Origin: Andalucia godoyi And28
Lineage: Eukaryota > Protista > Jakobida
Assembly: GCA_009859145.1 (NCBI GenBank)
Contig: VRVR01000037.1
Location: 138,892-202,891 of the forward strand
DNA: 64,000 nucleotides
Reading direction: 5' to 3'
Shown: positions 3,014 through 33,401 of the stretch, in pieces
Numbering within the stretch: position 1 is the stretch's first letter
How the letters are laid out: every line of letters starts with the position of its first letter
Translations under genes and position numbers: made by a program
Notes under the pieces: generated by a model
Database searches by the model: none
Told to the model about the DNA's origin: nothing
Seen by the model: the letters and a program-made list of their open reading frames with translations, nothing else

Positions 3014-3252
3014 AAGCATCTCTTTTCTTTTCCTTCCCTTCCCCCCTTCCCCCCTTCCCCCCTTTTTTTGGACAAGTATACGCTTAATTGTTGATGGATA
3101 GTACTAAATAATTAATAAAAAAATGATGATTTTCAAGAAGAACAGAAGGAAATGAAAGAGAAAAGGCGTACGTTTTACTTTGTATTGTAAGTGGCTGTTT
3201 GTTTTTTTGTCTTTTGTTTTGTTTTTGCTCTGCAAAACCCGGTGATAGATGT

Positions 3253-4446: not shown

Positions 4447-5077
4447 AGCGGTACACCTATTGTTGATGAATGAGGAAGACACGGATCAGAGGGAGTTGGG
4501 GATGGCGCTGGGAGCTTTTTGGGACGCAATCTTTATGAAAAATGAAAAACCTCCCCCGGTTTTGCCCAATTTATTATTTTTTTACAGCAAGTGCCGTCGA
4601 AAGGCACGAAAACAAAGCTCTCGCGGACTGAGAAATGTACAATGCAGATTCAGTCTTTCGGTCCAGAGGCAAAGCACGGTGGAATGAAGCAGCCCAAACG
4701 CTCTTAGGTGCTGACAAACCGACTGACGGGAAGAAATCAGCGCCTGCAAGAAAGCAAGAGAAACATGCAGACCACAGACGTCGTAACGCTAGTAGTTGAT
4801 AAGCACAGATCTCGCACATTGATCGTGCGGTGATACCTAATTCGAAGCTGACAGCTCTGCGTGTATGCGGATGCGGGATCCGCCCGCTCATCCTCTTTGT
4901 GTCACGCCCAGTCAACGATTCACAAAAAACAAAAAAAACAGAAAAAGAAAGAAAAAACCTCCGAATCCCTCTGTTCATTGTTTGCATTCCTGGAAAATAT
5001 GGATCGCTTTGATCATGCAAGAAGAGGTTCGCCGTGTTTTTCACGGAAGTCATTATACGGTCTGAGGTTGCGGATCC

Positions 5078-7237: not shown

Positions 7238-7583
7238 TCTTGCCCTACAGGTAAATATCAGTGCTTCTGTTTCAAATGTGTAGTGTTTGCATTCTGAGAT
7301 TGGGAAGTCTGCAATCGCACGGCCAGTTGTACACTCCAGCGTCCGCACGTTCTTCCACTAATCGATTGTGTCTTGTGTGCTTGTGTTTTTCTTATTGTTG
7401 TTCGATTTGTTTGGTTGGTTGTTTTTTTCGTGGCGATTTCCCGCTGCCCCGAAACTGCCTTGGCGATTTCGTTTTTTTTCCTCTTTTTTTTTTTGTTGGT
7501 TTTTTTGTTTTGTCTTTTGTTAGATTTTTGCCTCTGTACCTTTTTGCTTGGGGCTTGATAAGACAGCAACATTTATTTTTCAC

Positions 7584-8138
7584 ATGTTTCGAAAATTCCT
7601 AGACTGGGTCCGCTCCTTGTTCTTTAAGCAAGAAATGGAGCTGACACTAGTCGGGCTTCAGAATGCGGGCAAAACGACATTGGTGCATGTTCTTGCAGCA
7701 GGAGAATTCACAGAGGACATGATTCCGACTGTTGGGTTTAATATGAAGAAAGTGACAAAGGGAAAAGTTCAAATGAAACTGTGGGACGTCGGAGGTCAAT
7801 CCAAATTCCGTTCGATGTGGGAGCGTTACTGTCGAGGTGTTTCTGCAATTGTGTACGTGGTTGATGCGGCGGCCGGAGATGAAACTATGTCTCAAGCAAA
7901 GGAAGAACTGCATGATCTTCTTGGAAAGCCTGCACTGAATGGGATTCCTGTTCTGGTTCTTGGGAACAAGAACGACCTTCCGGGAGCATTGGGTACTGAA
8001 GAATTGGGAACGAAGCTGGATCTTCAATCTTTATCTGGAGAGCGAGAGGTCGCAGTCTATTCAATTTCTGCGAAGAATTCTAACAATATTGACAAGACCA
8101 TGGATTGGTTGATGAAACATGCAAAGAAACGAAATTGA
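7584..8138 (+). CDS. ARL8: ADP-ribosylation factor-like GTPase 8
   Basis: [40 protein letters not shown] and SAK motifs. Confidence 0.95.
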
Positions 8139-8216
8139 TTTCAAAAGCCGCAAATATTGCCGGCACATTTTACATCATTGTAAAAGAGAGAAGGAGGAAA
8201 AACCTACTCCGGTAAG

Positions 8217-16653: not shown

Positions 16654-17655
16654 ATGTCTCGTATCATTGACGGCAAGGCAATTGCTGCAACCATCCGTTC
16701 GGAAGTTGCAGCTCGCGTTAGCCATCTTCGCTCGCTCTCAAACCGAGTTCCTCATTTGGCTGTCGTTCTTGTCGGAGAACGTCCAGATTCTGCAGTATGT
16801 TTACCCCCTTTTCCCCGCTCCAGCACTTGCATTTCAGTTTGCTGTTTATTTCCGATCTGTACTGATCATTCTTGTGCAATGCACTTTCAACTGCAATTTT
16901 AGACGTATGTGCGAATGAAATCGAAAGCCGCTGAAGAATGCGGAATGGTATGCCGCGACGTTCATGTTCCTGCATCGGTAACCGAAAAGGAGCTGTTGTC
17001 CATTATCAACGACACTGCAGCTGATCCTGCAGTTTCTGGTATTTTGGTGCAGCTTCCCCTTCCTTCGCATATCCACGAACCGAAGATCCTTGCTGCGGTT
17101 CCGCCTTCGAAGGACGTCGATGGGTTTGACCGAGTTCATATTGGAGATCTTGCGCTGAAAGGACACACTCCACTGTTTGTGCCGTGCACCCCGCAGGGTT
17201 GCCTGGAGCTTCTTGTGCGTTCCGGAGTCACCTTGAAGGGTGCAAAGGCTGTTGTGATCGGCCGATCGAACATTGTAGGTTTGCCGATGGCTTTGCTGCT
17301 GCTTAAGAGTGATTGCACGGTTACTGTGTGTCACTCGCAGACCGCTACCGACGAGCTGATTCGAGAACTGAAAAGCGCAGATGTTGTGATTGCTGCGATT
17401 GGCAGACCCGAATTCGTCAAGGGCGAATGGATCAAACCTGGTGCCGTTGTGATTGACGTCGGAATGAATGCGGTTGAGCGTAACGGAAAGCAAAAGCTCG
17501 TAGGTGATGTTGCCTACGAAGAAGTCTTTCCTGTTGCTGGCATGATCACTCCTGTGCCCGGTGGTGTTGGGCCGATGACGGTTGCTTGTTTGATGAGAAA
17601 TACTCTCCGCGCTTTTGAGAGCCAGCTCACCAATGAAGGCATGCAGCTTGACTGA
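16654..17655 (+). CDS. folD: Methylenetetrahydrofolate dehydrogenase/cyclohydrolase, join(16654..16794,16903..17655)
   Basis: IIDGKAIA, LAVVLVGERPDSA|TYVRMK, GILVQLPLP, KDVDG, PCTPQG, VIGRSNIVG, ITPVPGGVGPMT. Confidence 0.95.
16795..16902 (+). other. Spliceosomal intron (108 nt, phase 0)
   Basis: GTATGT donor, ACTGAT branch-like motif, TTTTAG acceptor; removal gives PDSATYVRMK. Confidence 0.9.
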
Positions 17656-17929: not shown

Positions 17930-18672
17930 ATGCGTGTGAACGGATCTATTTGGTTGCTGGTGATCTCTGCAGTGTGCTTCGTGTCATGCACATGCTTTGC
18001 CGATCATGAGGATCTGAGGTACCAAAAGGTCCGTCTTGTTGCGACGTCGGACAGCTCTTCGGGGGCATCCAATCTCTTGTTCCGCACCAATGAACCAGTG
18101 GTGAATGGCACTTTTGCTTTCGACGAACTGGTGGGATTCATGAAGCAGCGCGCAGCAGAATCCAAGATCGTGTTCCAGAAACGTTTTATCTTGTGGATAT
18201 CAATTTCTTGAATGTGTTTGAAGAAAAGGATATTGAAACTGAAAAGAACTTCTTCAAAGCGGATCCTTCCCGGGGCGAGTTTGTTTTCTGGCCTATTGTT
18301 GGCAACTTGCTGGACCCACGCAACTTCTCTGAGTTTGAACGCAAACTTGCGGCTGAAGAGATGCCTCACTGGGATGTTGACGAATTAGGGAAGCGTGTTC
18401 CAGCGATGCATGCGATGCTGAACACAAAATACGATATTCCCCACGTGATCATTGGGCACTGTGAAGCTGGATCCGACAGAACTTCGGAAGTGTTTGCCTC
18501 GTATGCCATTCAGTTCCTCGGGTACACCACGAACCAGGCATTTGAGTGGTGTTCAACCATCGCAGGAAGATCTCCATACCAAGTGTCCTTGAATGCCTTT
18601 GACTGGTATTGCTACTATCTGAGTTATGTCCAGGGATTTTCCAGTCTTGATTGCAATGACTACCATCATTAG
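17930..18672 (+). CDS. Secreted cysteine-based (CX5R) phosphatase-like protein, split by a 1-nt frameshift at about 18175
   Basis: Signal-peptide-like MRVNGSIWLLVISAVCFVSC, LLFRTNEP, P-loop HCEAGSDRT. One extra C at 18175-18176 gives a continuous VFPETFYLVDINFLN. Confidence 0.7.
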
Positions 18673-18775: not shown

Positions 18776-21700
18776 CTACTCCCAGCATGTTCTCCCGCAA
18801 TACAGTAAAGCGGCGAAAATGATGAAGATGGCTAGCAATGCGACAAGGGTGTCCTGTACATAGACTCCGAGGAATCCCGCGCAAATAAACAAAAAGAAGA
18901 GCACAAAGTATCCCTCAATTGCCATTTCAAGCTGGTCCGCGGTCTTGGGAGCCGAGGATGACGAAGACGGCTTCGCCTTGTCGGGAATAGTCAAAATGAT
19001 GTTCCACATGCGGTTGTCATACTCGATTAAGTGCCATCCATCGTTGGCCTTCGTGCGTTTAGCTCCTCGGAGTTTCGGTGAGATCCTGCTATCTTGACAC
19101 ACCCGCCTTTCCTCCCATCTTGAGGGCGCAATCGGATCTGCAAAGGAATCAGAAATAAACCGACCATCAATAAAAGACGGCAGCCCAGACCGGTTCTTGA
19201 TTTTTCGGGGGATTCGAGACCGCGGGAGCGAAACAGCAATGTTATACAACAAGCCAGTTTGTCGGAACAATGCCAGAACCATGCTGTAACCGATAAAAGC
19301 CATCGAGGGAATGATGCCAGATTGAATATCTCGTCGTTTTCGCAAAGTCCAGACATCCAGCACAATATACAGAACGACAGCGCCAGCAATGAACAGCGCG
19401 AAACTGGCTGCCAGGAAAGGAATACTGTTGTTGTAGATTACAATGATTAGAAGCGGAATCCGAATGCAGTCCAAAACAAGAGACCAGAGCTCGTAGACGA
19501 GGTAGAGCTTCAAATTGAGCATTTGCCGATTCCAGACTGAGAGTGTCAGCACAAGGAACGTGAAAAACAATCTGAATGCCCCCGCATCCCACGAAGCGGT
19601 ACGTTGGCAAAAGAGCGATTTCTCCTCGTGCTTGCAACCCCACCTTGTACATCGATATGGAGCCGTCAGCATCCGAAATACTGCCGAACGCCCACTGTTT
19701 TTGGCCTGCGGGGTGTTCCAGGGGCAGCAAATGAAATGCGCAGGAGTTCGTGTGCCAATCGGAACATTTGCAACGTACTTCAGTGCATAGCCCTTGTTCA
19801 TAGAATGCAAAATAAGTCCCATCTGCATGTCCTCGCCATGAAAGTTCGTGTTGTGCCGCATCATGACTTCCACGAGAGTGTCTCTTCTCCACATCCCAAA
19901 CGCACCATGAGCAAACATCGTTGATCCCATTTGTGACTGGAACAGCTTCGTAATGCCTGCTTTTTTGTATTCAATATCCTGAAAGACCGGCCAAAAGTTG
20001 GGTCTGGTGTCCACTTTGTGAATATTGGATGCCCGAATGGAAAAGCCGACGCCGCGAACGTTCTCTTTAATTTCCATGAGCTCTGTTGGCAATTGTAGAT
20101 CTTCTGGCAAAATACAGTCATTGTCCATAACGCAGACGTACTTTTGCTTGCAAGACAGAAGAGAAGCCAAGTATATTGCAATGGACTTGTTTCCTTCTGC
20201 GGACCACACATACCGGATTGCACCCTCGGCGCCAGGCTTCGAAGACTTGAACTGTTCAGTAACTTCTTTGCAGCAGGAAAACGTATCGAGGATGAGTTTT
20301 CCGTCATTGGGGACGATCGCATTTCCATTATGACACACAAAAATGTTGTCCAGCGGAAAAAGGTTCACCGCTGCCTTCAGGGTGGCTTCCAGAGGTCCCC
20401 TCGGTCCAAAATGAGCGATGAGCAGCGCACAGTCCTCCAACTTTTTCGCACGATCCTGATGAATAGCTTCATCTACTTCCTTGTTTCCCGTGTTCGTTGG
20501 GAGCGGATAGGACACCGCAATCAGTGCGATAAACATCAGTCCAAGATCCATTGCTGCACCGAATAAGAAGACTAGCAAACTGTACCTTCTAATGAAGCCG
20601 CGCAGCCAGCCACAAGTTCCACAAGCATCACACGAAAGTTTTTTGCAGAAGCAAGTGCTTCCCGGACGAGGATTTAAGGGATTCGCATTCATCGAACAGT
20701 TCAAGTCTGCAGACAGGCATACACACGACGTATGTCCTTCGCATCTGCTTGCGCACTGTGGGAGGAACTGAATCGTATCGAATGACCTCGGCTCAGTCTC
20801 GAATGTCCCGCGATCTATTGTTACCGTCTGGCTAGGTGCGTTACACGACGAAGAAACATAGCAGCGCACCACCAAAAACATTACAACGAAGAAGAGCAAG
20901 TAGATCGTGAGAACATTTCCGAATTTTTCATACCGCTTTTCTTTCCAATTTCGAACATCTTGCTGAATCCGTTTGCACAAAACCAACTCTGGAGCCTTTG
21001 GGTCTTCTGAGCCTCTCAGGGTTCGAGACAAAAACAAACGAGCAGCAAAATCCTCAATGAAGAGCATGGCCCCTTTGCGAGACAAGGAGGGATATCGAAG
21101 AACACATGACCTGAGATTTTTCCACTCCTCTTGCAAGTCGTCCAGTTGGTAGAGCATACCCAGTCGGACCATCGAGCACATCAGCTCCAGAGCATGCGAA
21201 AGCAAAGACACCGCTCTCTCGTACTCAGCATCCTGGAAACACATTCTCCCCAGTTTTCTGCAGACCTCTACAATTTGAGGGAAAGCATGGAGTTTTTCTT
21301 CTTCACTCTCGTTACCGCTCCGAAAATGGTCAAACATGTCGTAGAGCAAAAAGAACGAAGGAGAATCTAGAAGCCTCACTTTTTTGCTAATTTCCACAAA
21401 CCTCTTCCGTTTGTTCCACAGCTCACAGGCATTATCAAGTTTTGAACGAATCTGGCGCAAGATTTCTTTCTCAGACGCACCTTTTGAAATGCTGGCTCTT
21501 CGTAACTCACTGAAGTTTAGATCGAATGCGGGATTTCGTTCTCCAACCAGACGATTACGCGACGACGAGGATGAAAAGCTTGTCGATGACGAGTGATACC
21601 ACATGCGACGGCCAGAAAACGACCGGAATGCGGGAAACGCAGCGTCTTGCGACGTCGAACTTCCGGATGCGGTATTTGTCTCGAGGGAAAACGTCACAGA

Positions 21701-22255
21701 CAATTCATCGGAGGGATGCTTGGTGACATGACACTCTGCTGGAGGAGGTATCTGTATTTGAACTTCACCGCTTCCTTCATTCGCGTTGGGGGTTGAAGGA
21801 TGTGTTGTGTTAGAACGAGAAAAGACATCCGCTGGAAATCCGTTTGCAAGATAACGAAACGGAGATACCGGTGACGATGCAGAGAGCGCTTGCGGTGAGG
21901 GCGAGGGACTGAGTAAGAGCGATGGAGATGGCGAAGCTCCTTCGACTGGGGAGACGGCACTGGGGGATCTCATGCTCGACAGCGGTGATATTGGAGTTGC
22001 CGCAGTTTCTTCTGCTGGCAGCACAAACATTTCGTCTGCATAGCGCACTGGCGAAGTCACCGTGAAGCCATTGGCAGCCTGAAAATGTTCTCTTAGCATT
22101 CCTGGAGACAGAGGTCCGATTGTGGTAGATCCAACCGACATTCTGCTTTCGAGCAAACGGTGATCTAACAAACGGAGGTGCCTTCGTGGAATCGAAGACA
22201 CCACAGCGCCGCAGGTTTCTGATTCGAAGTTATCCGCATCCGGTGATTCCTCCAT
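18776..22255 (-). CDS. Multi-pass processive glycosyltransferase family 2 (catalytic motifs intact)
   Basis: DxD motif (VMDNDCILP), FQDIEYK, HGAFGMWRR, GED (FHGEDMQMG), QRTASWD and flanking TM helices; first ATG at 22255. Confidence 0.8.
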   Translation of the reverse strand: MEESPDADNFESETCGAVVSSIPRRHLRLLDHRLLESRMSVGSTTIGPLSPGMLREHFQAANGFTVTSPVRYADEMFVLPAEETAATPISPLSSMRSPSAVSPVEGASPSPSLLLSPSPSPQALSASSPVSPFRYLANGFPADVFSRSNTTHPSTPNANEGSGEVQIQIPPPAECHVTKHPSDELSVTFSLETNTASGSSTSQDAAFPAFRSFSGRRMWYHSSSTSFSSSSSRNRLVGERNPAFDLNFSELRRASISKGASEKEILRQIRSKLDNACELWNKRKRFVEISKKVRLLDSPSFFLLYDMFDHFRSGNESEEEKLHAFPQIVEVCRKLGRMCFQDAEYERAVSLLSHALELMCSMVRLGMLYQLDDLQEEWKNLRSCVLRYPSLSRKGAMLFIEDFAARLFLSRTLRGSEDPKAPELVLCKRIQQDVRNWKEKRYEKFGNVLTIYLLFFVVMFLVVRCYVSSSCNAPSQTVTIDRGTFETEPRSFDTIQFLPQCASRCEGHTSCVCLSADLNCSMNANPLNPRPGSTCFCKKLSCDACGTCGWLRGFIRRYSLLVFLFGAAMDLGLMFIALIAVSYPLPTNTGNKEVDEAIHQDRAKKLEDCALLIAHFGPRGPLEATLKAAVNLFPLDNIFVCHNGNAIVPNDGKLILDTFSCCKEVTEQFKSSKPGAEGAIRYVWSAEGNKSIAIYLASLLSCKQKYVCVMDNDCILPEDLQLPTELMEIKENVRGVGFSIRASNIHKVDTRPNFWPVFQDIEYKKAGITKLFQSQMGSTMFAHGAFGMWRRDTLVEVMMRHNTNFHGEDMQMGLILHSMNKGYALKYVANVPIGTRTPAHFICCPWNTPQAKNSGRSAVFRMLTAPYRCTRWGCKHEEKSLFCQRTASWDAGAFRLFFTFLVLTLSVWNRQMLNLKLYLVYELWSLVLDCIRIPLLIIVIYNNSIPFLAASFALFIAGAVVLYIVLDVWTLRKRRDIQSGIIPSMAFIGYSMVLALFRQTGLLYNIAVSLPRSRIPRKIKNRSGLPSFIDGRFISDSFADPIAPSRWEERRVCQDSRISPKLRGAKRTKANDGWHLIEYDNRMWNIILTIPDKAKPSSSSSAPKTADQLEMAIEGYFVLFFLFICAGFLGVYVQDTLVALLAIFIIFAALLYCGRTCWE

Positions 22256-23039
22256 TTTGCCTTTTCCCTTTATTTGTTTTGTATGTTTTCCAGACAAGAG
22301 ATAGAAAAAAGAGAAAGAAAAAATTTTAGAGAAAGAATTGCCTGGGAAGAGAAAAAAAAATCACTTCCCTCTTCTTCTTCTTTTTTCTTTCTCCCTTGTT
22401 CTACAATCTGAGCTCAATTTTGAGCTGCGATTTTTTGAACTGGACCGTCCACATAATCTGTTAAAACTTGATTTACGCTGTTGAACGAACAGAAAAGGAT
22501 CCACCGCCAAGCATTTTTTGTGCAGCAACACCGGAGCAAAAACTAGAGGAGTGTTTTTTGGCCGCCCGCCACTGTGCTTTGCCCGGCGATGAATGCTGAA
22601 TCCGGACGTTTTGCAAAAAAGAAAATAGTCACAAATCTTTCCCGACGCTGGAATTCTCCCGATAAAAACTGCAAAAAAAATAATAATATTATAATAAAAA
22701 TCCACTGGAAACTTGAAGCGAGGAAAAAGCAGCAATCGCAATCTGGTCTGCTTTTCGTATTTCCTTTTTGGGCTTTCGAGTTCCGGTTTGGCCAGGTCGA
22801 AGCAGAGCGTCAACTTGCATCGTTTTTCTTGATGTTCCGTTGTTGGTGCGCCGGTGCGACGTCCTTCTCGACCTAACAAAAACCGAACGTCGGGGGAGGG
22901 GGCCTTCGAATGCTTTTCTCATAATTTTTTAAAATTATCATTCTTCGTTGTGCAGCGTATTTTATTTTATATTACTTACACTCCCAAAGCAAAACTGCTT
23001 TTCGTGTAGTATACATTTCAAAAAATTAGAGATTGCACC

Positions 23040-26000
23040 ATGGCATCGAACTCGAACAACTGGGAAACTGCCAGCAGCACGAGTTCTGCTTCGTCATCAG
23101 CAACTTCAAAATCTGTGGAGGCTCTTATTGCAGAAGCCCGTCGTCGCCGCCAGAACGGGGGCAATTCCCCTCCTGCAGAAGTGCGAACCGATCTTCTCCA
23201 GCAAAACGTAATTGGTGAAGATGGCTTGAATCGCGGAAACCCTGCGAATCGCGCTCAGAGGATGCACCAAGCATCCGAAGCGTCATCCATGAAACAGAAG
23301 TTCCGGAAGCAGCAAGCAGAGGCCGGTACCGATGCGCCTTCTGGGGAGGGTGATGCTGGAGAAGCCCCTGCAAGTTCAAATGACGTTGTATTTGGACAGT
23401 CTGGCATTTCCGTGGATGTTCGGCCGAACCTCGGTGACGGGGGACCCGAGTCTGAAAACGCTCCCTTGTCTCCTCCTGGCACCAAGCTGTCAGATGACTC
23501 GAATCCTGTGCAGCAGATGAATGACACTGAAAAAAGATCGTACGTCTCATCGATCATGAGGCGAAGATCTCCGTTCAAGCAGTCGAAAAAGCAGTCTTTG
23601 TACGAGTATCATTTCGACGAGAGGAAAAAGAAAGTCCACTCCCGCTTGTCTATCGAGCTTGTGCTTGCAATTGACTGGGGCCAAAGAATGGCGGAGCTTC
23701 GTAGTCAAGGCTATTCGGAAGAGAAAATCTGTTCCGTAATCCACGAAGATGTCCACACAATCGTCAAAGGATTACTAAATCACCTGGATCGTACGGAGAA
23801 GTTGGATACGCTCAGCACAGACAGCGATGCGTTTCTGTATCTTTATGCGGAATATGATGCGTTCGTCTCGGATTCTTCTTCTCTCGAAGAAAAGCTAAAG
23901 TCTTACCCGCATATTGTGTCTGTCTGCCAAGTGCTTGCTCTCCTGTATTCAGGAACATACGACAATGACATTGCAGCCGATTTGTCCGCACAAGCACTGC
24001 ATCTGATGCTTCACTACAATGTTCGTGGTGTGATGTTTGTCTCTGATCACGTCCTCTGGAATCAGTGGAAAGATTTGCGTTCTTACTCCACAAAGCGCCG
24101 CTTGTCTCCTGTTGGAAAAGTGGAGTACCTTGAGAGAGTGCTGCAGCAGGCGAAATACAGCGTTCTTCGCGAAGAAAATGTCGACATATCTAAAAAACCA
24201 TTGATGAAGAAGATAGAAAAGGACTTGAATAAGGTGAAGCAAGGGAAGTTTGAATTTGTCACAGGAGTCCTGCTAGCACTGTTCATCTCATTTTTCGCTG
24301 TGTTCCTCGCAACCCGATGCTACGTGGATTCCTCCTGTTCTGTTCCCGGTCAGTCGATGACGTTGCTCGCCCACACATATGATTACAGCCCTCCGTTACT
24401 CGGTGATGCTGCAATTCAGCCCTGTCAAGTTTCTTGCACGTTGTTTCGCCCAGCATGTACCTGCGAACGTTCTGATCTTTCTTGTCCCTCGAGTGAACTT
24501 GGTTCGACTTGTTTCTGTTCGAGCTTGACTTGCGACCAGTGCAACATCTGTGGCTTGATCAGAAAGCTCTTTCGTGACAACATATTCTTGTTCTTCTTTC
24601 TTCCGGCAATCTTGCATCTCGTTATCTTTGCAATGTCAATCAGCATTGTTCGCTTCCCGGAGGCGCCTCTGCAGTGGGATGTCGAACTGGACTCTGAATT
24701 CTACCGAATTCGAGAAGCGAATTTGGAGCATATGACCGTTGTTGTTGCGCATCAAGTCGGCAGTCACCACAACTTGGAACGAACAATTAAAGCGCTGTTG
24801 GAGATTGTTCGTCCTGGTCAGGTTGTGATTGTGCATTACGGGAAAACCGATATTCCTTTTGAGAATGACGGCGTGGAGGGCATCATTCAGCTGACCACGG
24901 ATCTTACGAACACGTTCTATGAAGTGAATCCTGAAGAAAGCAAAGAAAATGGAGGCTCTGTGAACTATTCCTGGGTCTGCACCGAGTCACGAACATTCGC
25001 AATCTACATGGCAGTGTTGTCCAAGGTGACATCTAAGCATATAATGGTGTTGAAGGACGACTGCGTCCTCCCACGAGAGTTGTTTATCCCTTGCAATTGG
25101 TTCAAAGAAGACGAGCTCGTGTCTGCAATATCTTTCTTTTCTCGAGCGGATCAGCTGGTGTCGCCGTTTGGACACGCAAACAAAGTCGCGATATTGCAGG
25201 ACATTTATGCCAAGAAGTTTGGTGTGATGTCCGTCTGGCAGTCCGCTTCAGGCTCCATGTTCTGGCCGTCACAACACTGTACGATTTGGAAGCGGGACGA
25301 CTTGCTCAAAGTTATGGACCGCCATGACTGTTCCTTGATGGGTGACGCAATTCAACAAGGTATTTTGCTTCACAAAATGCACCAGTCGAACAGAATCAAG
25401 TGCGCAGCCAATGTTCCGATTCCTGTTCCGCATCCGTCCCATTTGGTCTGCTGGCCGTGGAATTCTGCGTCTGCCAAGAGCGCCAACAAAAGCTTCCTCT
25501 CTCGCTTGATTCTCGCACCTTTCCATTGCCGTGTTTGGGGCTGCCAGCACCGAGCGAATTCCGTGTTTGCAGATGTGGTTCGGACCACCATTTCGCAATA
25601 CAAATTCTTGTTGCCAGAAATTTCTGTACTTCTCTGGGTGTGGAATCGAAATACGATTGTCCTGAAACTGTTCATTTTGTCGGACATCCTAGATGTCATT
25701 ATGGATTTCATTCGCTTGCCGTTGCTTTTCTTCATTGCATACTCGGGCAGGTGGGAGGAATTCTCTTATTTGCATCAGCTGGCTTTCTACTTTGGCATTG
25801 TATATATCCTAAATGTCCTTCTGTTGGCTGCCATGGAATTGTGGCAATTCCGAGAGCGATTGGAACTTCAGTCCACGTTCGGTTTCTTACTGGTATATCC
25901 CCTCTTCTGTTGTTTGACGCAAGTTTTCAGGCAGATTGCAGCATTCTATGCCATTCTTCGACTGATTCCGCGCAGCCAGAATTCGCTCAAGATCATCCAG

Positions 26001-26411
26001 AGACTTCGTCTTCCAGTTCTTGTCGATTCAAATCATATGTGCACCGAGCTTGGAGTGACCCCTGAGCCGCCTTCTCGAGCCGAGACGGCTTTCTACAAGA
26101 ATCAGCTGCGCCACATTGAAATCCACGGAATGCAGCGAAACGTGGACGGCAGCTGGTCGCTTTTGAAGTGGAACCAAGCTGCAAAAGGATGGGAGGATGA
26201 GAAATCGATCAACGATGACGAAGCGAAACGCCAGTCTATGCGACGAGAAAGGGACTACACTTTGCTACTTATCCTGGTCCTGGTCCCGTTCCTTGCTGGA
26301 GCTGCGTATCTTGCGTTGCTCGACTTCCCTATGCTTATCCTGATGTCGCTGATTTTCGTCGGCTTCATTGTTATTTCCGTCTTCAACAGTGCGCTGTTTT
26401 CTATTGCATAA
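23040..26411 (+). CDS. GT2 paralogue with degenerate catalytic motifs (pseudo-glycosyltransferase)
   Basis: Colinear with the 18776-22255 protein (RCYVDSSC, GSTCFC, LQDI..KK, WPWN..AK, C..WGC.H) but has LKDDC, MGDAIQQG and no QRxxxW. Confidence 0.75.
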   Translation: MASNSNNWETASSTSSASSSATSKSVEALIAEARRRRQNGGNSPPAEVRTDLLQQNVIGEDGLNRGNPANRAQRMHQASEASSMKQKFRKQQAEAGTDAPSGEGDAGEAPASSNDVVFGQSGISVDVRPNLGDGGPESENAPLSPPGTKLSDDSNPVQQMNDTEKRSYVSSIMRRRSPFKQSKKQSLYEYHFDERKKKVHSRLSIELVLAIDWGQRMAELRSQGYSEEKICSVIHEDVHTIVKGLLNHLDRTEKLDTLSTDSDAFLYLYAEYDAFVSDSSSLEEKLKSYPHIVSVCQVLALLYSGTYDNDIAADLSAQALHLMLHYNVRGVMFVSDHVLWNQWKDLRSYSTKRRLSPVGKVEYLERVLQQAKYSVLREENVDISKKPLMKKIEKDLNKVKQGKFEFVTGVLLALFISFFAVFLATRCYVDSSCSVPGQSMTLLAHTYDYSPPLLGDAAIQPCQVSCTLFRPACTCERSDLSCPSSELGSTCFCSSLTCDQCNICGLIRKLFRDNIFLFFFLPAILHLVIFAMSISIVRFPEAPLQWDVELDSEFYRIREANLEHMTVVVAHQVGSHHNLERTIKALLEIVRPGQVVIVHYGKTDIPFENDGVEGIIQLTTDLTNTFYEVNPEESKENGGSVNYSWVCTESRTFAIYMAVLSKVTSKHIMVLKDDCVLPRELFIPCNWFKEDELVSAISFFSRADQLVSPFGHANKVAILQDIYAKKFGVMSVWQSASGSMFWPSQHCTIWKRDDLLKVMDRHDCSLMGDAIQQGILLHKMHQSNRIKCAANVPIPVPHPSHLVCWPWNSASAKSANKSFLSRLILAPFHCRVWGCQHRANSVFADVVRTTISQYKFLLPEISVLLWVWNRNTIVLKLFILSDILDVIMDFIRLPLLFFIAYSGRWEEFSYLHQLAFYFGIVYILNVLLLAAMELWQFRERLELQSTFGFLLVYPLFCCLTQVFRQIAAFYAILRLIPRSQNSLKIIQRLRLPVLVDSNHMCTELGVTPEPPSRAETAFYKNQLRHIEIHGMQRNVDGSWSLLKWNQAAKGWEDEKSINDDEAKRQSMRRERDYTLLLILVLVPFLAGAAYLALLDFPMLILMSLIFVGFIVISVFNSALFSIA

Positions 26412-26446: not shown

Positions 26447-27649
26447 TTATAGCAATCCGGTGACAGTATTTTCTGCTTCCGATCGATCGATTTTGATCAA
26501 TGAATGCGCAACAAGAGAATAAATGACTTGCAGAACCATGGATGGATCGAGAAAATCACTCAGTTCTGCCTTTAGATCTTTCAAATACATGTGATTGCCA
26601 TTTGCAGAGAGTATTGATAGAGCAACGGCATACGCGTTCTCCTCACTGGAGAGTTTTGCTACCAGATAGTTTGCCATCGCACTGTACACCCGATGCGTTC
26701 TTTCATACTCACGTTCTTCATGGTTTAGACGCGTGATGTGCTTTTGAAGATCCACAACAACAGGATGGCTTCGCTGAATCAGCGCAAACTGCTCTTCTCG
26801 TAATGCAATCGTTTTCTTCAACTCTTCAATTTCTTGCACTGTTTCTTCGTACCTTCTTTGAATATGCGCGGAAGCTTTGGACGGAGTGTGTACAGAGGGC
26901 GAAGCCATCAAAATAGACTTCAATACGATTTCGTGGTCCGCAAACACCCTTTCCTTCTCTGCAATCTCGGCAAGCAGAGTTTCGACTTCATTCCGAAGCA
27001 GTGTCTGACTCTCTTCCACATGAATCGACTCAAGATGGTACTCGCTGATTCGCTTCTTGACATCCTCGATTTCGCTCTTCAACACACGGATTTGAGAATC
27101 AAAGGTTTGCATCTGGAGCTTCATCGATTCTTCAGCCTTGAGGTTATTTTGCAGCTGCTCAGACAATGGCAAAACACCAAGTTCTTTGCGCTGCCGCACA
27201 AGCTGCTCTCTGGAATCACTCGAGGAATACTTCGAAAGTGATGCTTCCAAATTATTCAGCTCTTCCACGAGGTTCAGGAACTTGGCTCGCAAAGCCTCAT
27301 GCTCGATGACTTCGTCATGCAAGCTGTACATATCCGAGAGCTCGAAAAGCCACGATAGCAAATCCTCAATTTTCTTGATCCGCATGGAAACGCTTTCGTT
27401 TGGAAGCAGATCGGAAGGACTGGCTTGCAGAACATCGATCGAAAGCCGCCCTGCTCCGGGCGCAGCAGCCCTGGGAACGCCTTTGTGCGAATGCGCAAGA
27501 ATAAATCGAATATCCTGAGGAGAACTGTCGGAAACACTAAGACCAGGTCGTTCAGACAGCGCAAGTACCGGAAGCTGAGACACACCTTCACAAAAAGCAA
27601 CAATCTCGTTCAAAAGAATCGAAGAATGCAGAATCGGATCGACGGACAT
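26447..27649 (-). CDS. Coiled-coil protein with possible C-terminal winged helix
   Basis: Long heptad E/K/L-rich region, then YLKDLKAEL…VLQVIYSLVAHSLIKIDRS. ATG at 27649; the upstream in-frame stretch is T-rich and looks non-coding. Confidence 0.7.
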   Translation of the reverse strand: MSVDPILHSSILLNEIVAFCEGVSQLPVLALSERPGLSVSDSSPQDIRFILAHSHKGVPRAAAPGAGRLSIDVLQASPSDLLPNESVSMRIKKIEDLLSWLFELSDMYSLHDEVIEHEALRAKFLNLVEELNNLEASLSKYSSSDSREQLVRQRKELGVLPLSEQLQNNLKAEESMKLQMQTFDSQIRVLKSEIEDVKKRISEYHLESIHVEESQTLLRNEVETLLAEIAEKERVFADHEIVLKSILMASPSVHTPSKASAHIQRRYEETVQEIEELKKTIALREEQFALIQRSHPVVVDLQKHITRLNHEEREYERTHRVYSAMANYLVAKLSSEENAYAVALSILSANGNHMYLKDLKAELSDFLDPSMVLQVIYSLVAHSLIKIDRSEAENTVTGLL

Positions 27650-28263
27650 CCTCAGCCTACTGTTTCCTAAAATGACAAAAAAAAGCCAGGCAATAAAAAA
27701 ACAAACAAACACAATAATAATAATAAAAAGTAATATTGAAAATAACACAATAACCAGACAATTCAAAAAATAAAATAAAATAAGATAATAAAACTCGCAA
27801 AAAATTCTCCAATATGCATTAAAAAAAATAATATATAAATATAGAGTGAAAACTGAAAAATGGCGCCAAAAAAATAAAAATTAATAATAAAAGCTACAAA
27901 AGGACTGAAACCGGGGGGGATGAGTATCGGGAATTTTCCAGTAGGCTACGGCCGTTGAGGTGGACCGTCGCCATGTTGGAACTTTCAACTTGACGAGATG
28001 TCGAACTTCTCTTGGCAGTGAAGTTCTTTTTCTCCTGCGAAGAAGTCGCCGTTTATTCCACCTGACCTCGAGCGAGATTCGACGCGAATGTGTTTAAAAG
28101 ACTGGGTATTGCGTAAAACTGCTCTTTTCCCATTTCTTCTTCTTCTTCTTCCTTGTCTTCTCGTCTTCTTTCCTCCAACAACTCTCTCAATCTCCTCCAT
28201 CTTCTTCTTCGTATCATTGTTATTACTATTTGACCACAGACCTCGCGTCGTTACATTGCAATC

Positions 28264-30888
28264 ATGAGCACGCTCTCCAACACGATTCTCGTTCTTGGTG
28301 GCGACGGATATCTTGGATGGCCGCTGTCGGTCAGTCTCGCGTTGAAGAACCCATCCACCAAAATCATCTGTGTGGATAATATGCTCCGCCGTAAGCTGGT
28401 TCGTTCGTGTGGCTCTGATTCTCTTCTTCCTATTCTCTCACCGCAGGAGCGCGTTTCTGCTTTCCGCCGCATCTACGGACAAACCAACCTGCAGTTTCTC
28501 GGTCTGGATGTGACTTCGCCCGAGATTACGCAGCTGATTGCTCGTGAGCGTCCGCATACGATCTACCATCTGGCACAGCAGTGTTCTGCCCCGTATTCCA
28601 TGTCCTCTCCGGAAGCTGCCATTTTTACTGTCAACAACAATGAAGGAGGAAACATGCGGCTTTTGTGGGCGGTTCGTGATCATGTTCCCGAGGCGCACCT
28701 CATCAAGCTTGGCTCGTTCGGAGAGTACATGAACTGCGGGTTGGACATCATGGAGGGATACTACTATCCTGAGCACAACGGAAAGAAGGCTTGCGTGAAG
28801 GCCCCTTTCCCGCGCCAGTCTGATGACATCTATCATGTCTCAAAGATCAACGATTCCAACTACATCTCCGTGGCCTGCAGGAAATGGGGCTTGCGCGTGA
28901 CGGACATCATGCAGGCAACTGTGTTTGGCACGTGGACTCCTGAGACCCACAGTCACCCCGAGCTGTGGACTCGTATGGATTACGATGAGAAATTCGGAAC
29001 GGTCATGAACCGTTTTCTTACGCAGATGATGATCGGCGAAGCCCTGACGGTCTACGGAACAGGAAAGCAGCGTACTGGACTGATGGCTCTTTCCGACTCG
29101 GTGCACTCTTTGGCTGAGTTGGTTTCTTCCGTCCCCGAGCCGGGCGAGCACCGCGTGATCAACCATGTCACGGAGAAGTCGTTCTGCATCAATGAAATCG
29201 CTGAGCTGGTCAAGATGGTCGGCCGAGATGAGGGATTCCAGGTTCTGGTGACGAACGCATTTGATCCTCGCGAAGAACGCCCCTCTGAAAAGGCAACATA
29301 CGACATCGAGACAAAGTACGTTTCGAATCACGTTGCGAAGACTCCGTTGGCAACTGTGCTCCGACAAACGCTTTCCATGATTGCAAATCACCGCAATCGC
29401 ATCAAGGTCGAAGTGGTGGTGCCGAAAACCATCTGGAGAAAGGAGGCCACCGCCACGGAAGCCTCGCAACAGACAGCCAAGCCAGCGCAGTGCGACACCT
29501 CCAATGACTTTAATCTGCTGTCACCGAGCTTCAAGAGTCCTCGCAAGTTTGCATCCCTCGATCTCATCCCGCAGCTGCGAAGCGCGGACAAGGCGTCCAT
29601 TGCTTCTGACGAAGATTACTGGAATTGCTTCCGTGACCAGTTTTTCCCTTCGCGCCGAATCAACCTGAATGCTGGCACTTTGGGAACCACTTCCATGGAA
29701 GTCCGGAAGGCCTCCTATCTCTTTTACGCAGAGGACTTGCCTGCCTACCCCCTGGGGCAGTATTCAAAGGGCCGTGAAACTCTGTCAAAGGTCGTCAAAT
29801 TAGCAAATGAGATTTGGCCGTCGGCGACCCATGAGGTGACAGTCAACGGCTCTGCGAGCCAGTGTGCCAACCTGCTTGCTCTTGCACTGTCGCGCGTTGC
29901 TTGGAAGGAAGGCAGTCGTCAAGGTGAAGGACATCCTCATTTTACCTTGTTAACAACGGATCACGAGCATGTTGGCGGCATCGGCGCCTTCTCTCGCTTA
30001 CCAGAGTTCAAAGTCTCCCAGCTGAGCAACCATGAGCTGTCTAATGTTGATGCTTTCGAGGCTCGGGTTGCTGCAAGTCGTCCCGACATTTTCTTCGTGT
30101 CGCACATTTCGTGTGTCACGGGAGAAATCTTTCCTGTCGAACAGTGGAGCTCGATCATCCGCCGCATCGTTCCGCATGCAATCATCATCTTGGACGTTGC
30201 CCAGTCCCTTGGAATCCTCCGTTTGCCGCTGCAGGCTGCCGATTGCATCTTTGGATCTGTGCACAAGTGGTTGTTTGGGCCGCGGGGCTGCGGACTTTTG
30301 TGGACCAACGAGAAGCTCCGCAACTTCGTGAAAGCCATCAACTGGTCCGGTGAAGAAATTCATCCCAGAGAAGGCGGCCACGGATTCTCCATTCCGGGCG
30401 GCCAGGATTTCGGATCATACGCAAAGCTGGAGGCAGCTCTTCGTCTGTATGCAGCTGTCGGACCAGAGTTGATTTACAAGAGAGGGTCGTCACTGAGAAA
30501 ACACTTTGAGGAACGCATCTGCACCATCTTTGCGCAAGCAGGATTGTCAGTCCAGATCCAGCAACCATTCAATGGCGCTCCCTCACAGTCTCCGTGCATC
30601 ACTTCTCTTGTTTGTACGAACTTTGATCCGTACGAGTTTTATTCATATCTGAACCAGCATGGTGTGCACGTCAAGTGCATGAAGGGGAAGTCAGTTGGGG
30701 ACGTTGTGCGCTTTTCGTTCCCGTACTATGAATCCGTCTATCGCATTGACGAAGCCTTGAGAATCATCGAGAACGGTGTCAGCCATGTCACGACCCAGCC
30801 GATCCAACTCATCGCGAAGGATGCCAACAAAGGGGAGCTCTTGCGCGAAGCAAAGAAGAACAGTTTCAACGTTGTTGCCATGCTCTGA
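28264..30888 (+). CDS. Fusion: UDP-sulfoquinovose synthase (SQD1-like SDR) plus class-V PLP aminotransferase/C-S lyase-like domain
   Basis: N-half: VLGGDGYLGWP, SAPYSM, KLGSFGEY, YHVSK, TDIMQATVFG, FGTVMNRF, LTVYGTGKQ. C-half: LNAGTLG, TDHEH, DVAQSLG, GSVHKWLFGPRGCG, VRFS. One uninterrupted 874-aa frame. Confidence 0.85.
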   Translation: MSTLSNTILVLGGDGYLGWPLSVSLALKNPSTKIICVDNMLRRKLVRSCGSDSLLPILSPQERVSAFRRIYGQTNLQFLGLDVTSPEITQLIARERPHTIYHLAQQCSAPYSMSSPEAAIFTVNNNEGGNMRLLWAVRDHVPEAHLIKLGSFGEYMNCGLDIMEGYYYPEHNGKKACVKAPFPRQSDDIYHVSKINDSNYISVACRKWGLRVTDIMQATVFGTWTPETHSHPELWTRMDYDEKFGTVMNRFLTQMMIGEALTVYGTGKQRTGLMALSDSVHSLAELVSSVPEPGEHRVINHVTEKSFCINEIAELVKMVGRDEGFQVLVTNAFDPREERPSEKATYDIETKYVSNHVAKTPLATVLRQTLSMIANHRNRIKVEVVVPKTIWRKEATATEASQQTAKPAQCDTSNDFNLLSPSFKSPRKFASLDLIPQLRSADKASIASDEDYWNCFRDQFFPSRRINLNAGTLGTTSMEVRKASYLFYAEDLPAYPLGQYSKGRETLSKVVKLANEIWPSATHEVTVNGSASQCANLLALALSRVAWKEGSRQGEGHPHFTLLTTDHEHVGGIGAFSRLPEFKVSQLSNHELSNVDAFEARVAASRPDIFFVSHISCVTGEIFPVEQWSSIIRRIVPHAIIILDVAQSLGILRLPLQAADCIFGSVHKWLFGPRGCGLLWTNEKLRNFVKAINWSGEEIHPREGGHGFSIPGGQDFGSYAKLEAALRLYAAVGPELIYKRGSSLRKHFEERICTIFAQAGLSVQIQQPFNGAPSQSPCITSLVCTNFDPYEFYSYLNQHGVHVKCMKGKSVGDVVRFSFPYYESVYRIDEALRIIENGVSHVTTQPIQLIAKDANKGELLREAKKNSFNVVAML

Positions 30889-31189: not shown

Positions 31190-33232
31190 TTAGACAGCAG
31201 ACCCATGACTCGAAATGTCGGATCCAGCAGAGTAGCTGGATCTGAGAGAATCCACGTCATTGTCAGAACCAGCAGCATCATGACTACTAGATCCTCGAAA
31301 ATAAGCATCGTCGCCGTCGTCGCCGTCGTCGTGGTCGTGGTCATCATCACCACCACCACCATCACCAACAACCGGGCTACCATCGTCCGACAAGACCGGA
31401 TACTCGCGCGATACTCGCCCACTCAGCGACGGTGGACCACCCGATTTCTTCAGATCCCACCCAAGTAATGTCAAGGACTCCAAAGACTTGTGTGCGTTCT
31501 TCAAATCATTCGAGCTCACACTTCTCCACAACTGTCTTTCGAAGAATGAAACGAGTTCATCTTTTGCAGAACTTGCGACACGCAAACTGCTCGAAAAGCC
31601 AGGCCGCTTCTTCGCCCGAATTTCCGAGGGAAGCGTGTCATTGCAAGGGCTGGACAAAGATGTACAATCCACAATGATTTTAGCAACTTGCAACGAAATA
31701 TCGTTCTGCCGAGTTCGGAATCGATCGAGGACCTCGAGGACGTTTTGGCGCTCGTGCAACACGAACGGACAGGAGGAAACAACAAAGAACGTCGATGACA
31801 AATGCATTGTACGGCAAAACGCCTGCAGCGACTCTCGCAGCTTCAGGATTGCGGCCGAATCTTTGCAAAGCGCCAACTCCAGAGGAGCAACAACAGTGTG
31901 AACCCGAAGAGAGGACTGCTCTAGAACAGCAGGATACACGAGGTTTTGAACGATTTCAACAACTTTCTGAACCCCCCAGGTTTCATTGAATCCCGCGCAC
32001 ATTGTGCACGCAGATTGGATGCTGGACACCCACTCCACAAGCCGCAGAACAACAACAGGGCCATACTCAACAAACGCAACAAAGGATCTTCCAACGACGT
32101 TCGCAGAGCAAGAATAGGACCTCACAGACTCCACAATGCTTTGTATCAGTTCCAGCCTGGCAGACAGCGATAGTTTGAGAATCAGGACTTTGTGACGGCT
32201 CCACAATCGGAAAAGAGGGCTTCCATACGTCAAGAGTTCGGGAATGACTTCAGGGCGACGACGGATTGTCAACAACTCTGCTTCAGCTGATGCAGACGAC
32301 TCCCGGAAGAACGTCCACGTGGCGTCTGTCAACACAACTTGGATGCCATGCTGGCTCGTAGAACTTTGACGGTCATTGAAACGGAGAGCATGCACCACAT
32401 CGCAGCACTCCTTGATGGAGTGCTTCACAGTTTCAAGAGTACAGAACATTCCGTCCAGAACATTCGGAATGTTCAAGCCTGCAAGATCCGTCATCTCCAG
32501 CGAAAATGACGCGCAAATGACGAGGGAAACAGAGCAAGCGCCGGCAAACATGGTAGTCAGTTCCATCAATTCTGTCATCCACGCGTTGCACAGCCGCCAA
32601 GGCAAACAAACATGAATGCGGCGAGCGCTCTCTGCATCGCCTTCTGTGGCAACGAAATCCTCCAATTCCCGCTCAATCTCAACAAATCCGAGTTCGCGGA
32701 ACACAATCTCATTGAGGGCATCGTGATCCCAAAACAACGTTTCAAAGGTCGTCTGCCGATTGCATTCCAGTAAGCACGCCACCTTATCATGAGACTTTTG
32801 CAGCAAGCTCAATTCACCCTCTTGTGTTCTGCCTTGTTGGACCGCATGCTCAATCCGACTTTGAGATGCACTGATCTCGGTTTGAGCAGCCTTCCCCTGA
32901 TCCTCCAGCAATCTTGCGCTGTTCTCCAGAACCGCAATTTCCTGTTCAATCTGCCACAGTTGCTTCTGCACGTCACGTGCTTCCTCAACCAGCTGTTTTT
33001 GTAGTTCTTCCTTTTCAGCCAAGCAAGACTGGAGATCTTGCACTGTGCGATCGATTGATCTCGTCAAGATTGCTCGTGCGCGCATTTGTTCCGCATGTTT
33101 GGATCGAAGTTGAGACAATTCCAGTGCATTCTGAGTGATTTGAGGATCCAGCCGGGCGATCTTGGATGCGATCGAACTTGCACATCGAGAAAGTCGATCA
33201 TGAGAAACCCACGACGGACGCAGAATATCCAT
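31190..33232 (-). CDS. Hypothetical protein: N-terminal coiled coil, acidic low-complexity tail
   Basis: About 680-aa ORF with heptads (LQSCLAEKEELQKQL…) and a G/D/H-rich C-terminus; no family recognised. Confidence 0.7.
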   Translation of the reverse strand: MDILRPSWVSHDRLSRCASSIASKIARLDPQITQNALELSQLRSKHAEQMRARAILTRSIDRTVQDLQSCLAEKEELQKQLVEEARDVQKQLWQIEQEIAVLENSARLLEDQGKAAQTEISASQSRIEHAVQQGRTQEGELSLLQKSHDKVACLLECNRQTTFETLFWDHDALNEIVFRELGFVEIERELEDFVATEGDAESARRIHVCLPWRLCNAWMTELMELTTMFAGACSVSLVICASFSLEMTDLAGLNIPNVLDGMFCTLETVKHSIKECCDVVHALRFNDRQSSTSQHGIQVVLTDATWTFFRESSASAEAELLTIRRRPEVIPELLTYGSPLFRLWSRHKVLILKLSLSARLELIQSIVESVRSYSCSANVVGRSFVAFVEYGPVVVLRLVEWVSSIQSACTMCAGFNETWGVQKVVEIVQNLVYPAVLEQSSLRVHTVVAPLELALCKDSAAILKLRESLQAFCRTMHLSSTFFVVSSCPFVLHERQNVLEVLDRFRTRQNDISLQVAKIIVDCTSLSSPCNDTLPSEIRAKKRPGFSSSLRVASSAKDELVSFFERQLWRSVSSNDLKNAHKSLESLTLLGWDLKKSGGPPSLSGRVSREYPVLSDDGSPVVGDGGGGDDDHDHDDGDDGDDAYFRGSSSHDAAGSDNDVDSLRSSYSAGSDISSHGSAV

Positions 33233-33401
33233 CCTTTCGACACGCGCGCACACGCACACTCCTTCTTTCAATGCACGGTGTCTCAACTAGGATTCAGGTG
33301 CGGGTGTGAGTGTCGAAACCACAAAAGATGCTGGTCACTCTCGCCCCACCTCTCCTGAACTTGGCGGCAGATTTCCCTGGAATTCCCCCCAGAAGCCGAT
33401 G

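Follow-up and report, generated by a model that had tools for sequence, protein, structure and literature searches.

Membrane-integrated synthases of glycosyltransferase (GT) family 2 make cellulose, chitin, hyaluronan, and the glycans of biofilms. Hyaluronan synthases (HASs) work without a paralogous partner. Paralogue-based hetero-oligomers are required for glycan synthesis in several other systems, namely, Cosmc/T-synthase, GtfB/GtfA, EXT1-EXT2, CHPF/CHSY1, and the plant CesA complexes. The first four combine a glycosyltransferase with a paralogous noncatalytic partner and belong to other GT families or folds (GT31, GT4, GT47/64, and GT7/31), and every subunit of the plant CesA complexes is catalytic. 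We know of none among these pairs that is a membrane-integrated GT2 synthase with a dead copy and, more generally, of no membrane-integrated GT2 synthase that depends on a catalytically dead copy of itself. Outside polysaccharide synthesis, the trypanosomatid prozymes (AdoMetDC/prozyme and the deoxyhypusine synthase DHSc/DHSp) are cases in which selection has kept a dead paralogue because the live enzyme is activated by it within a heteromeric complex (PMC5201418, PMC3663545). Here, we analyze a head-to-head pair of paralogous genes, termed A and B, in a 64,000-nucleotide stretch of contig VRVR01000037.1 (assembly GCA_009859145.1, forward-strand positions 138,892 to 202,891), hereafter the window, to which all coordinates refer unless another locus is named. 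Our preferred reading, which we hold at about even odds (a probability of roughly 0.5), is that A would be a synthase-translocase and B a noncatalytic subunit that pairs with an A-type synthase. B is a genuine candidate for a pseudo-enzyme partner in a new protist synthase family.

Gene A lies on the minus strand (18776..22255) and encodes a membrane-integrated GT2 synthase-like protein of 1159 amino acids, as judged from the open reading frame (ORF) listing, Pfam, and an AlphaFold2 (AF2) model. Its stop codon is at 18776-18778, and the frame remains open to a TTG at 22297, with the first ATG at 22255. Gene B lies on the plus strand (23040..26411) and encodes a pseudo-glycosyltransferase paralogue of 1123 amino acids with no match to the Pfam GT2 models. 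The genes are divergent, and the distance between their ATG codons is 785 bp. In a BLASTP comparison, 1063 residues of the two proteins align colinearly with 27% identity (E=9e-113), a similarity far above the chance level, and the proteins are paralogues. The arrangement had been proposed in an earlier sequence-only reading, and the ORF listing and BLASTP bear it out; the motif strings quoted there were also all found, with MDND, QDIEY, GED, and QRTASW in A and LKDD, QDIYA, and GDA in B. The spacer between the genes (22256..23039, 784 bp) is A/T rich and presumably serves as a shared promoter region. Inspection of the spacer sequence and a repeat scan returned low-complexity A/T-rich repeats only, with no credible gene and no notable common motif.

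The public EukProt model of gene A (P0001) consists of the C-terminal 591 amino acids only and begins at an internal Met. The 568 codons upstream of that start are open and are conserved in the orthologues P0008, P0002, and P0009, so the public model is truncated. The B protein is identical to its annotated EukProt model.

Pfam identified GT2 domains in A (PF13641 at 35.3 bits, with a cut-off of 27, plus PF13632 and PF00535). Only these generic GT2 models matched, and no match to the dedicated chitin-synthase and cellulose-synthase models of Pfam was reported at E values of up to 1. The AF2 model of A had a mean predicted local distance difference test (pLDDT) score of 73.8 and a predicted TM-score (pTM) of 0.72, with the AF2 models built on only 8 sequences. 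The best fold matches of this model in the PDB, found with Foldseek, were Xenopus XlHAS1, Chlorella virus HAS (CvHAS), the bacterial cellulose synthase BcsA, and the chitin synthases of yeast, Candida, and Phytophthora (Chs1, CaChs2, and PsChs1). Superposition on CvHAS (8sne) gave a TM-score of 0.58 by target length, and the Foldseek alignments extended over about 500 columns and covered whole HAS chains. A 23-sequence profile of the family aligned with Escherichia coli PgaC at an hhalign probability of 97.9% (E=6.7e-13), with the motifs in register (D-x-D with DGD, QxxEY with QVGEY, HGA with SG, GED with TED, and QRxxSW with QRLRW, where the family has one extra residue). The match of the family profile to E. 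coli BcsA was weak (hhalign probability of 6%). The NCBIfam PgaC_IcaA model (TIGR03937, cut-off of 422 bits) matched neither A nor B, and the relatives P0005, P0037, P0042, and P0050 scored about 20 to 34 bits against it, far under the cut-off.

To describe the active site, a signature of 13 positions was used: the Lys of GNK, the two Asp residues of DxD, the Q, E, and Y of QxxEY, the H and G of HGA, the E and D of GED, and the Q, R, and W of the last motif. All 13 are intact in A. The sequence-only reading had taken D, DxD, (G/T)ED, and QxxRW as the motif set; DxD and GED were found in A, whereas the first D and the last motif take a different form in this family. In place of the Asp that opens the D,D,D series and binds uridine at the end of strand β2, clades A1 to A3 and B (introduced below) have a conserved His, and distant members have C-D-N-G at this place. 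The last motif reads QRxxSW family-wide, with Q, R, and W invariant and the Arg preceding the Trp not conserved. The description of A as an active-looking GT2 synthase held up, given the Pfam GT2 matches, the likeness of the AF2 model to HAS, BcsA, and chitin synthases, and the PgaC motifs in register. By its motifs and predicted fold, A belongs to the synthase-translocase class of membrane-integrated GT2 enzymes and keeps the full family signature, and we infer that it is catalytically active. Channel-type transmembrane (TM) and interface helices are predicted behind the GT domain in both A and B.

The two proteins share one domain order, which was derived from the alignments, a hydropathy scan, and the AF2 models. 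A disordered N terminus is followed by a helical domain of about 200 residues, TM1, a Cys-rich loop, TM2, the GT-A domain with a His/Cys knuckle, interface and TM helices, a small beta-rich domain, and terminal TM helices. The N-terminal helical domain of A, predicted to be cytosolic (residues ~245 to 440; 20936..21523, minus strand), is 51% identical to that of P0008 and matched no Pfam family. By hydropathy and alignment, TM1, the 12-Cys loop, and TM2 span residues 445 to 463, 464 to 549, and 561 to 579 of A (20519..20923, minus strand) and residues 406 to 424, 426 to 505, and 515 to 533 of B (24255..24638, plus strand). The loop comprises about 85 residues, and all 12 of its Cys residues are kept across the A and B clades; because of these cysteines and the charges flanking the loop, it probably faces the outside. 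The C-terminal part of A (18794..19570, minus strand) would contain the interface helices, TM helices at residues 923 to 941 and 948 to 966, the beta-rich domain at residues ~1030 to 1095, and terminal TM helices at residues 1136 to 1154, as delineated from AF2 secondary structure, the hydropathy scan, and the Foldseek alignment spanning the whole HAS chain.

The GT-A (GT2) domain of A, likewise predicted to be cytosolic (19571..20443, minus strand), was delimited by the motif table, the invariant alignment columns, and the hhalign alignment to PgaC. Its motifs are C-H642-N-G, G-N-K690, D711-N-D713, Q759DIEY763, H783-G-A, G807ED809, and Q884RTASW889. The degenerate counterpart in B (24717..25604, plus strand; motif table and signature census) reads V-H599-Y-G, E-S-R651, K672-D-D674, Q720DIYA724, P743-S-Q-H in place of HGA, G768DA770, and D845VVRTT850 in place of QRxxSW. 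Inserted into the GT domain just ahead of the QRxxSW helix is a knuckle of the form H-x2-C ... C-x4-C-x-H (19628-19738 on the minus strand in A, 25440-25550 on the plus strand in B), whose residues include H840, C843, C869, and C874 in A and H801, C804, C830, and C835 in B. Both clades, A and B, conserve this knuckle, which takes a compact form in metamonad relatives and is probably a structural zinc site. A site of this kind is not known as a feature of the described synthases.

The loss of catalytic residues from B was evaluated in a census of the retrieved relatives that cover at least 11 of the 13 signature positions (n=122). No mismatch was found in 79 of these proteins, one in 30, and two in 8, such that 117/122 relatives have at most two mismatches; a further 2 proteins have three mismatches, all conservative changes. 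The remaining 3 have 9 to 12 mismatches and correspond one for one to the B-clade proteins of full length, i.e., window B (11 mismatches), P0006 (9), and P0012 (12). The QRxxSW motif as a whole, including the acceptor Trp, is absent from the B clade, all members of which have also lost the QxxEY and HGA loops, and the QR…W motif that the sequence-only reading had reported missing from window B is indeed replaced there by D845VVRTT850. Invariant new residues (P743, S744, S841, F843, A844, and T850) occupy the former substrate loops throughout the clade. Pfam GT2 models found nothing in B, and a profile of the four B proteins did not retrieve PgaC with hhalign, whereas a similarly shallow profile of six A-clade proteins did so at a probability of 45% (E=2e-4). 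The AF2 model of B had a pLDDT of 75.8 and a TM-score of 0.60 by target length against CvHAS, with A-type rows in the alignment, from which the fold is partly borrowed. The predicted fold, the His/Cys knuckle, the ectodomain cysteines, the TM motifs, and the C-terminal domain are all retained.

B could in principle still be a glycosyltransferase that acts through noncanonical residues, in which case the pair would be a synthase with two activities, making, for example, an alternating copolymer. The DxD motif reads K-D-D in window B and P0006, keeping its last Asp, P0006 also keeps an intact G-E-D, and all B proteins have Arg, likewise a basic residue, at the position of the phosphate-binding Lys. 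Retention of the equivalent acidic residues, which the sequence-only reading had named as a refuting condition, is not seen for the residues as a set, although single positions are kept. The retained residues are, however, not clade-wide, with SDY in place of DxD in P0012 and with GDA, GEA, and GEH in place of GED in window B, P0007, and P0012, respectively, three of the four members; no member has the acceptor Trp or the QxxEY and HGA loops, and neither the Pfam nor the PgaC profile gives a signal. We regard a still-active B as very unlikely. Because the fold, knuckle, cysteines, and TM helices of B are kept under purifying selection (see below) while the catalytic motifs are lost, B is best classed as a pseudo-glycosyltransferase.

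Relatives were gathered by homology searches, among them one with the conserved part of A. About 500 proteins reached E≤1e-3, all annotated as hypothetical and none with a functional name. The distant members come from Barthelona, from skoliomonad-like isolates listed as "Eukaryota sp.," and from Telonema. Among the closer members, subclade A1 contains window A and P0008 (run SRR28285705), A2 contains ANDGO_03581 of Andalucia and P0009, and A3 contains ANDGO_07653 and P0003. The B clade has four members, namely, window B, P0006 (SRR15116022), P0007 (JGI 3300042934), and ANDGO_00015 (Andalucia godoyi), and the orthologues of window B that were compared are P0006, P0007, and P0012. In a neighbor-joining tree, the B clade is monophyletic, has a long stem, and is sister to A1 to A3; the tree therefore places the A/B duplication before the split of the window lineage from Andalucia godoyi.

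The sequence-only reading had described B as a long-retained protein, and the comparison of its orthologues agrees. These are 34 to 56% identical across four sources, and the degenerate GT domain itself is 55% identical between window B and P0006, a conservation equal to or above that of the other parts of B. In codon comparisons, the proportion of synonymous differences (pS) was 0.76 to 0.80, i.e., saturated, and that of nonsynonymous differences (pN) was 0.28 to 0.36, the same level as in A orthologues (0.365). Since the synonymous sites are saturated, pN and pS are reported here in place of a dN/dS ratio. That B is a decaying pseudogene or evolves neutrally might be supposed from the loss of its catalytic motifs. 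The intact ORF of 1123 codons, the orthologues from four sources, and the low pN against a saturated pS led us to reject this explanation, the probability of which is negligible. The codon comparison thus excludes neutral decay, which the sequence-only reading had likewise named as a refuting condition, and indicates that B has been maintained by purifying selection across species.

A synteny check of the linkage of A and B gave a mixed outcome. In a contig from SRR15116022 (L001), a B orthologue at 2874-6218 on the plus strand is ~48% identical to window B, and the minus strand carries, from position ~1200 down to where the contig stops, the coding sequence for an A-type N-terminal helical domain. 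This N terminus matches window A best (E=2e-12); P0009 and P0008 follow, and every B protein ranks lower. The head-to-head pair is thus present in L001, where the surroundings are rearranged: the gene for an SQD1 fusion protein that neighbors the pair (see below) is inverted, the coiled-coil gene of the window is missing, and the gene next in synteny is 22 kb away in the window. The pair is not present at the locus of P0008, the closest A orthologue (L003). Profile scans of JGI metagenome contigs with the A and B alignments confirmed no locus and added no neighborhood examples. A-type genes do occur in every source that bears B, i.e., the window, SRR15116022, JGI 3300042934, and Andalucia. Overall, the arrangement is not universal, and its recurrence is suggestive of a meaningful link. 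At L003 (1-10870), all four genes share a strand and are separated by 16 to 265 bp, a polycistron-like layout unlike the window with its alternating gene orientation.

Several observations weigh against the preferred reading. The gene that precedes P0008 in L003 is a methyltransferase gene on the same strand rather than B, no B gene was found within 8 kb of the A3-type locus L002, and the adjacency in the window may be a mere relic of an inverted tandem duplication. No synthase was found when the PDB was searched by sequence, with either A or the 23-sequence profile as the query; a link came only from fold comparison and from hhalign to E. coli PgaC. A also departs from the classical signature in having a His for the first Asp and a last motif, QRTASW, without an Arg before the Trp. 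The few sequences beneath the AF2 models and the borrowed part of the B fold also count here, as does the fact that this is a protist family without a characterized member. A literature search found no description of this synthase family or of the kinesin-GT2 and SQD1 fusions discussed below.

The missing B genes at L003 and L002 also speak for an alternative in which B has acquired an independent, nonenzymatic role (it might be a membrane scaffold or channel or a receptor that binds glycans) and in which its position beside A is left over from the duplication. The long stem branch of B would fit such a change of role, as would the clade-invariant residues that have replaced the active site. 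Conversely, the head-to-head pair survives the local rearrangements in L001, and B keeps all the structural elements that it has in common with A (the cysteines, the knuckle, the TM motifs, and the C-terminal domain), as joint assembly would predict. An independent role is possible, but on this balance we consider it doubtful.

The preferred reading, that B is the noncatalytic partner of an A-type synthase, would then operate as follows. The N-terminal helical domain and the GT-A domain of A would lie in the cytosol, with the 12-Cys loop facing outward and the helices behind the catalytic domain forming an export path. A would use a uridine diphosphate (UDP)-sugar donor and would most likely produce a beta-linked surface glycan. 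A and B go back to one gene, which was duplicated long ago. Missing from B are the Lys that binds phosphate, the first of the two DxD Asp residues, the substrate loops QxxEY and HGA, the Asp that serves as catalytic base, and the entire QRxxSW acceptor motif. As a subunit, B could contribute to the assembly, trafficking, or activation of A or help to give the export channel its shape, and transcription of the two genes would diverge from their common 784-bp spacer. The paralogy and fold class of the two proteins and the motif loss, age, and constraint of B are observed features of the locus. The heteromer, co-regulation, and cyst-wall role put forward in the sequence-only reading are plausible proposals, of which the last is a reasonable guess, and the part in translocation suggested there is likewise putative.

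Next to the pair, on the side of B, the window contains a gene for an SQD1 fusion protein of 874 amino acids (28264..30888, plus strand). It joins a UDP-sulfoquinovose synthase (SQD1) domain (residues 7 to 399) to a class V pyridoxal phosphate (PLP) domain resembling cysteine desulfurases and C-S lyases (residues ~520 to 840). The SQD1 part matched the PDB structures of SQD1 (1i2b/1qrr, E=1.4e-75) and the NCBIfam model NF041015 (2.5e-101), and the PLP part matched SufS, EgtE, and Egt2. The protein lacks an N-terminal targeting extension. In L001, the fusion gene (6393-9062, minus strand) adjoins the B orthologue. Between B and the fusion gene, the window contains an ORF for a 439-amino-acid coiled-coil protein (26447-27766, minus strand), the sole match of which is weak and SMC-like and which has no counterpart at that place in L001. 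The PLP domain might supply sulfite, e.g., as a cysteine sulfinate desulfinase.

This neighborhood raises an alternative in which A, B, and the SQD1 fusion form a three-gene unit and UDP-sulfoquinovose is the donor from which A makes a sulfonated glycolipid or surface glycan. In the window, 1.85 kb separates the fusion gene from B, and in L001 the distance is 175 bp, while the next syntenic gene has moved 22 kb. Because the SQD1 domain starts at residue 7 with no N-terminal extension, UDP-sulfoquinovose would share a compartment with the GT domain. Yet only two moderately related genomes have the arrangement, for which residual synteny suffices as an explanation, and the sequence of A gives no indication of donor specificity. 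The known sulfoquinovosyl transferases sit in other GT families, which also counts against a unit of this kind, and we consider it unlikely. A fuller version is less probable still; here, in a heterotrophic protist, the unit would be conserved, the PLP domain would free sulfite from a cysteine-derived substrate and hand it directly to SQD1, and the resulting cytosolic UDP-sulfoquinovose would be polymerized or transferred by A/B to a sulfonated surface or cyst-wall glycan. If this is correct, sulfoquinovose would have a previously undescribed use away from photosynthetic membranes, and the GT2 synthases would gain a donor new to them. Sulfoquinovosyldiacylglycerol (SQDG), the lipid made from the SQD1 product, has been stated not to be known in any eukaryote that lacks a plastid (10.64898/2026.03.27.714854, 2026 preprint), and the SQD1 fusion is of interest in its own right.

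The other genes of the window, which include those for an importin-beta, a Myb protein, a PH-domain protein, a BUB1 kinase, ESF1, and a La protein, are eukaryotic; gene orientation alternates throughout, on which ground a trypanosomatid origin was rejected, and the GC content is ~0.48. Rfam and tRNA scans across the 64-kb window gave no match. Directly downstream of A, an ORF of 159 amino acids (18193-18672, plus strand) contains the Cys-X5-Arg phosphatase-type motif HCEAGSDRT; Pfam and NCBIfam gave no match to it at E≤0.001. Two further ORFs appear partial. That for a methylenetetrahydrofolate dehydrogenase/cyclohydrolase (16909-17655, plus strand) is missing the first ~45 positions of the catalytic domain, and only a small part of the profile was matched by a V-ATPase subunit a-like ORF (31190-33286, minus strand). 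Unlike A and B, both probably contain introns, or else they have diverged.

Fusions among the distant relatives of A add to the picture of the family. Two such proteins come from metamonad assemblies. P0031 (L008, 3001-8069; GCA_040285825.1) combines a kinesin motor, a TM helix, two H-type lectin domains, further TM helices, and a GT2 domain, and P0025 (L009, 3001-7640; GCA_040285805.1) combines an H-type lectin domain with a GT2 domain. The lectin domains of both lie between the first TM helices, the place taken by the Cys-rich loop in A and B. By analogy, the motor and lectin fusions would fit a surface-glycan synthase that is delivered along the cytoskeleton and whose ectodomain handles the product, a likeness that does not identify the sugar.

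Compared with the known systems, A resembles HAS, PgaC, and the chitin synthases and yet, judged by its profile matches, falls outside their curated families. The closest structures to A and B are those of the hyaluronan synthases (Chlorella virus HAS and Xenopus HAS1; 8sne and 8smn), with TM-scores of 0.58 to 0.60 by target. The likeness spans the GT-A domain, the interface, and the TM helices over ~500 columns, and the HASs are single-chain synthase-translocases. It has no counterpart at the sequence level, and A and B have an N-terminal domain, a 12-Cys ectodomain, a knuckle insertion, and a C-terminal beta domain that the HASs lack. PgaC, of the E. coli poly-beta-1,6-GlcNAc synthase PgaC/PgaD, is the best profile-level relative tested and also needs a second membrane subunit, with the annotation naming PgaC and PgaD both "synthase subunit." In contrast to B, PgaD is a small protein unrelated to PgaC and not a dead paralogue. 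The chitin synthases (Chs1, CaChs2, and PsChs1) share the fold class and the QxxEY-type motif of A. Since chitin synthases of solved structure are dimeric, a dimer of A and B is plausible, and we know of no dead-paralogue subunit among these enzymes. The kinesin motor of P0031 parallels the myosin-chitin synthases of fungi (classes V/VII) and molluscs (PMC2241824, PMC12653383), with the differences that the motor is a kinesin rather than a myosin and that A has no Pfam chitin-synthase match. The relation of A to B most resembles that within the prozyme systems, which serve as our working model for B. Those are soluble enzymes of polyamine and hypusine metabolism rather than glycosyltransferases, and their complexes and activation are demonstrated, whereas the A/B complex would be one deduced from genes. 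If B is an obligate subunit, the prozyme principle would reach the polysaccharide synthases, and the pair would provide a handle on the wall and coat polymers of little-studied free-living protists.

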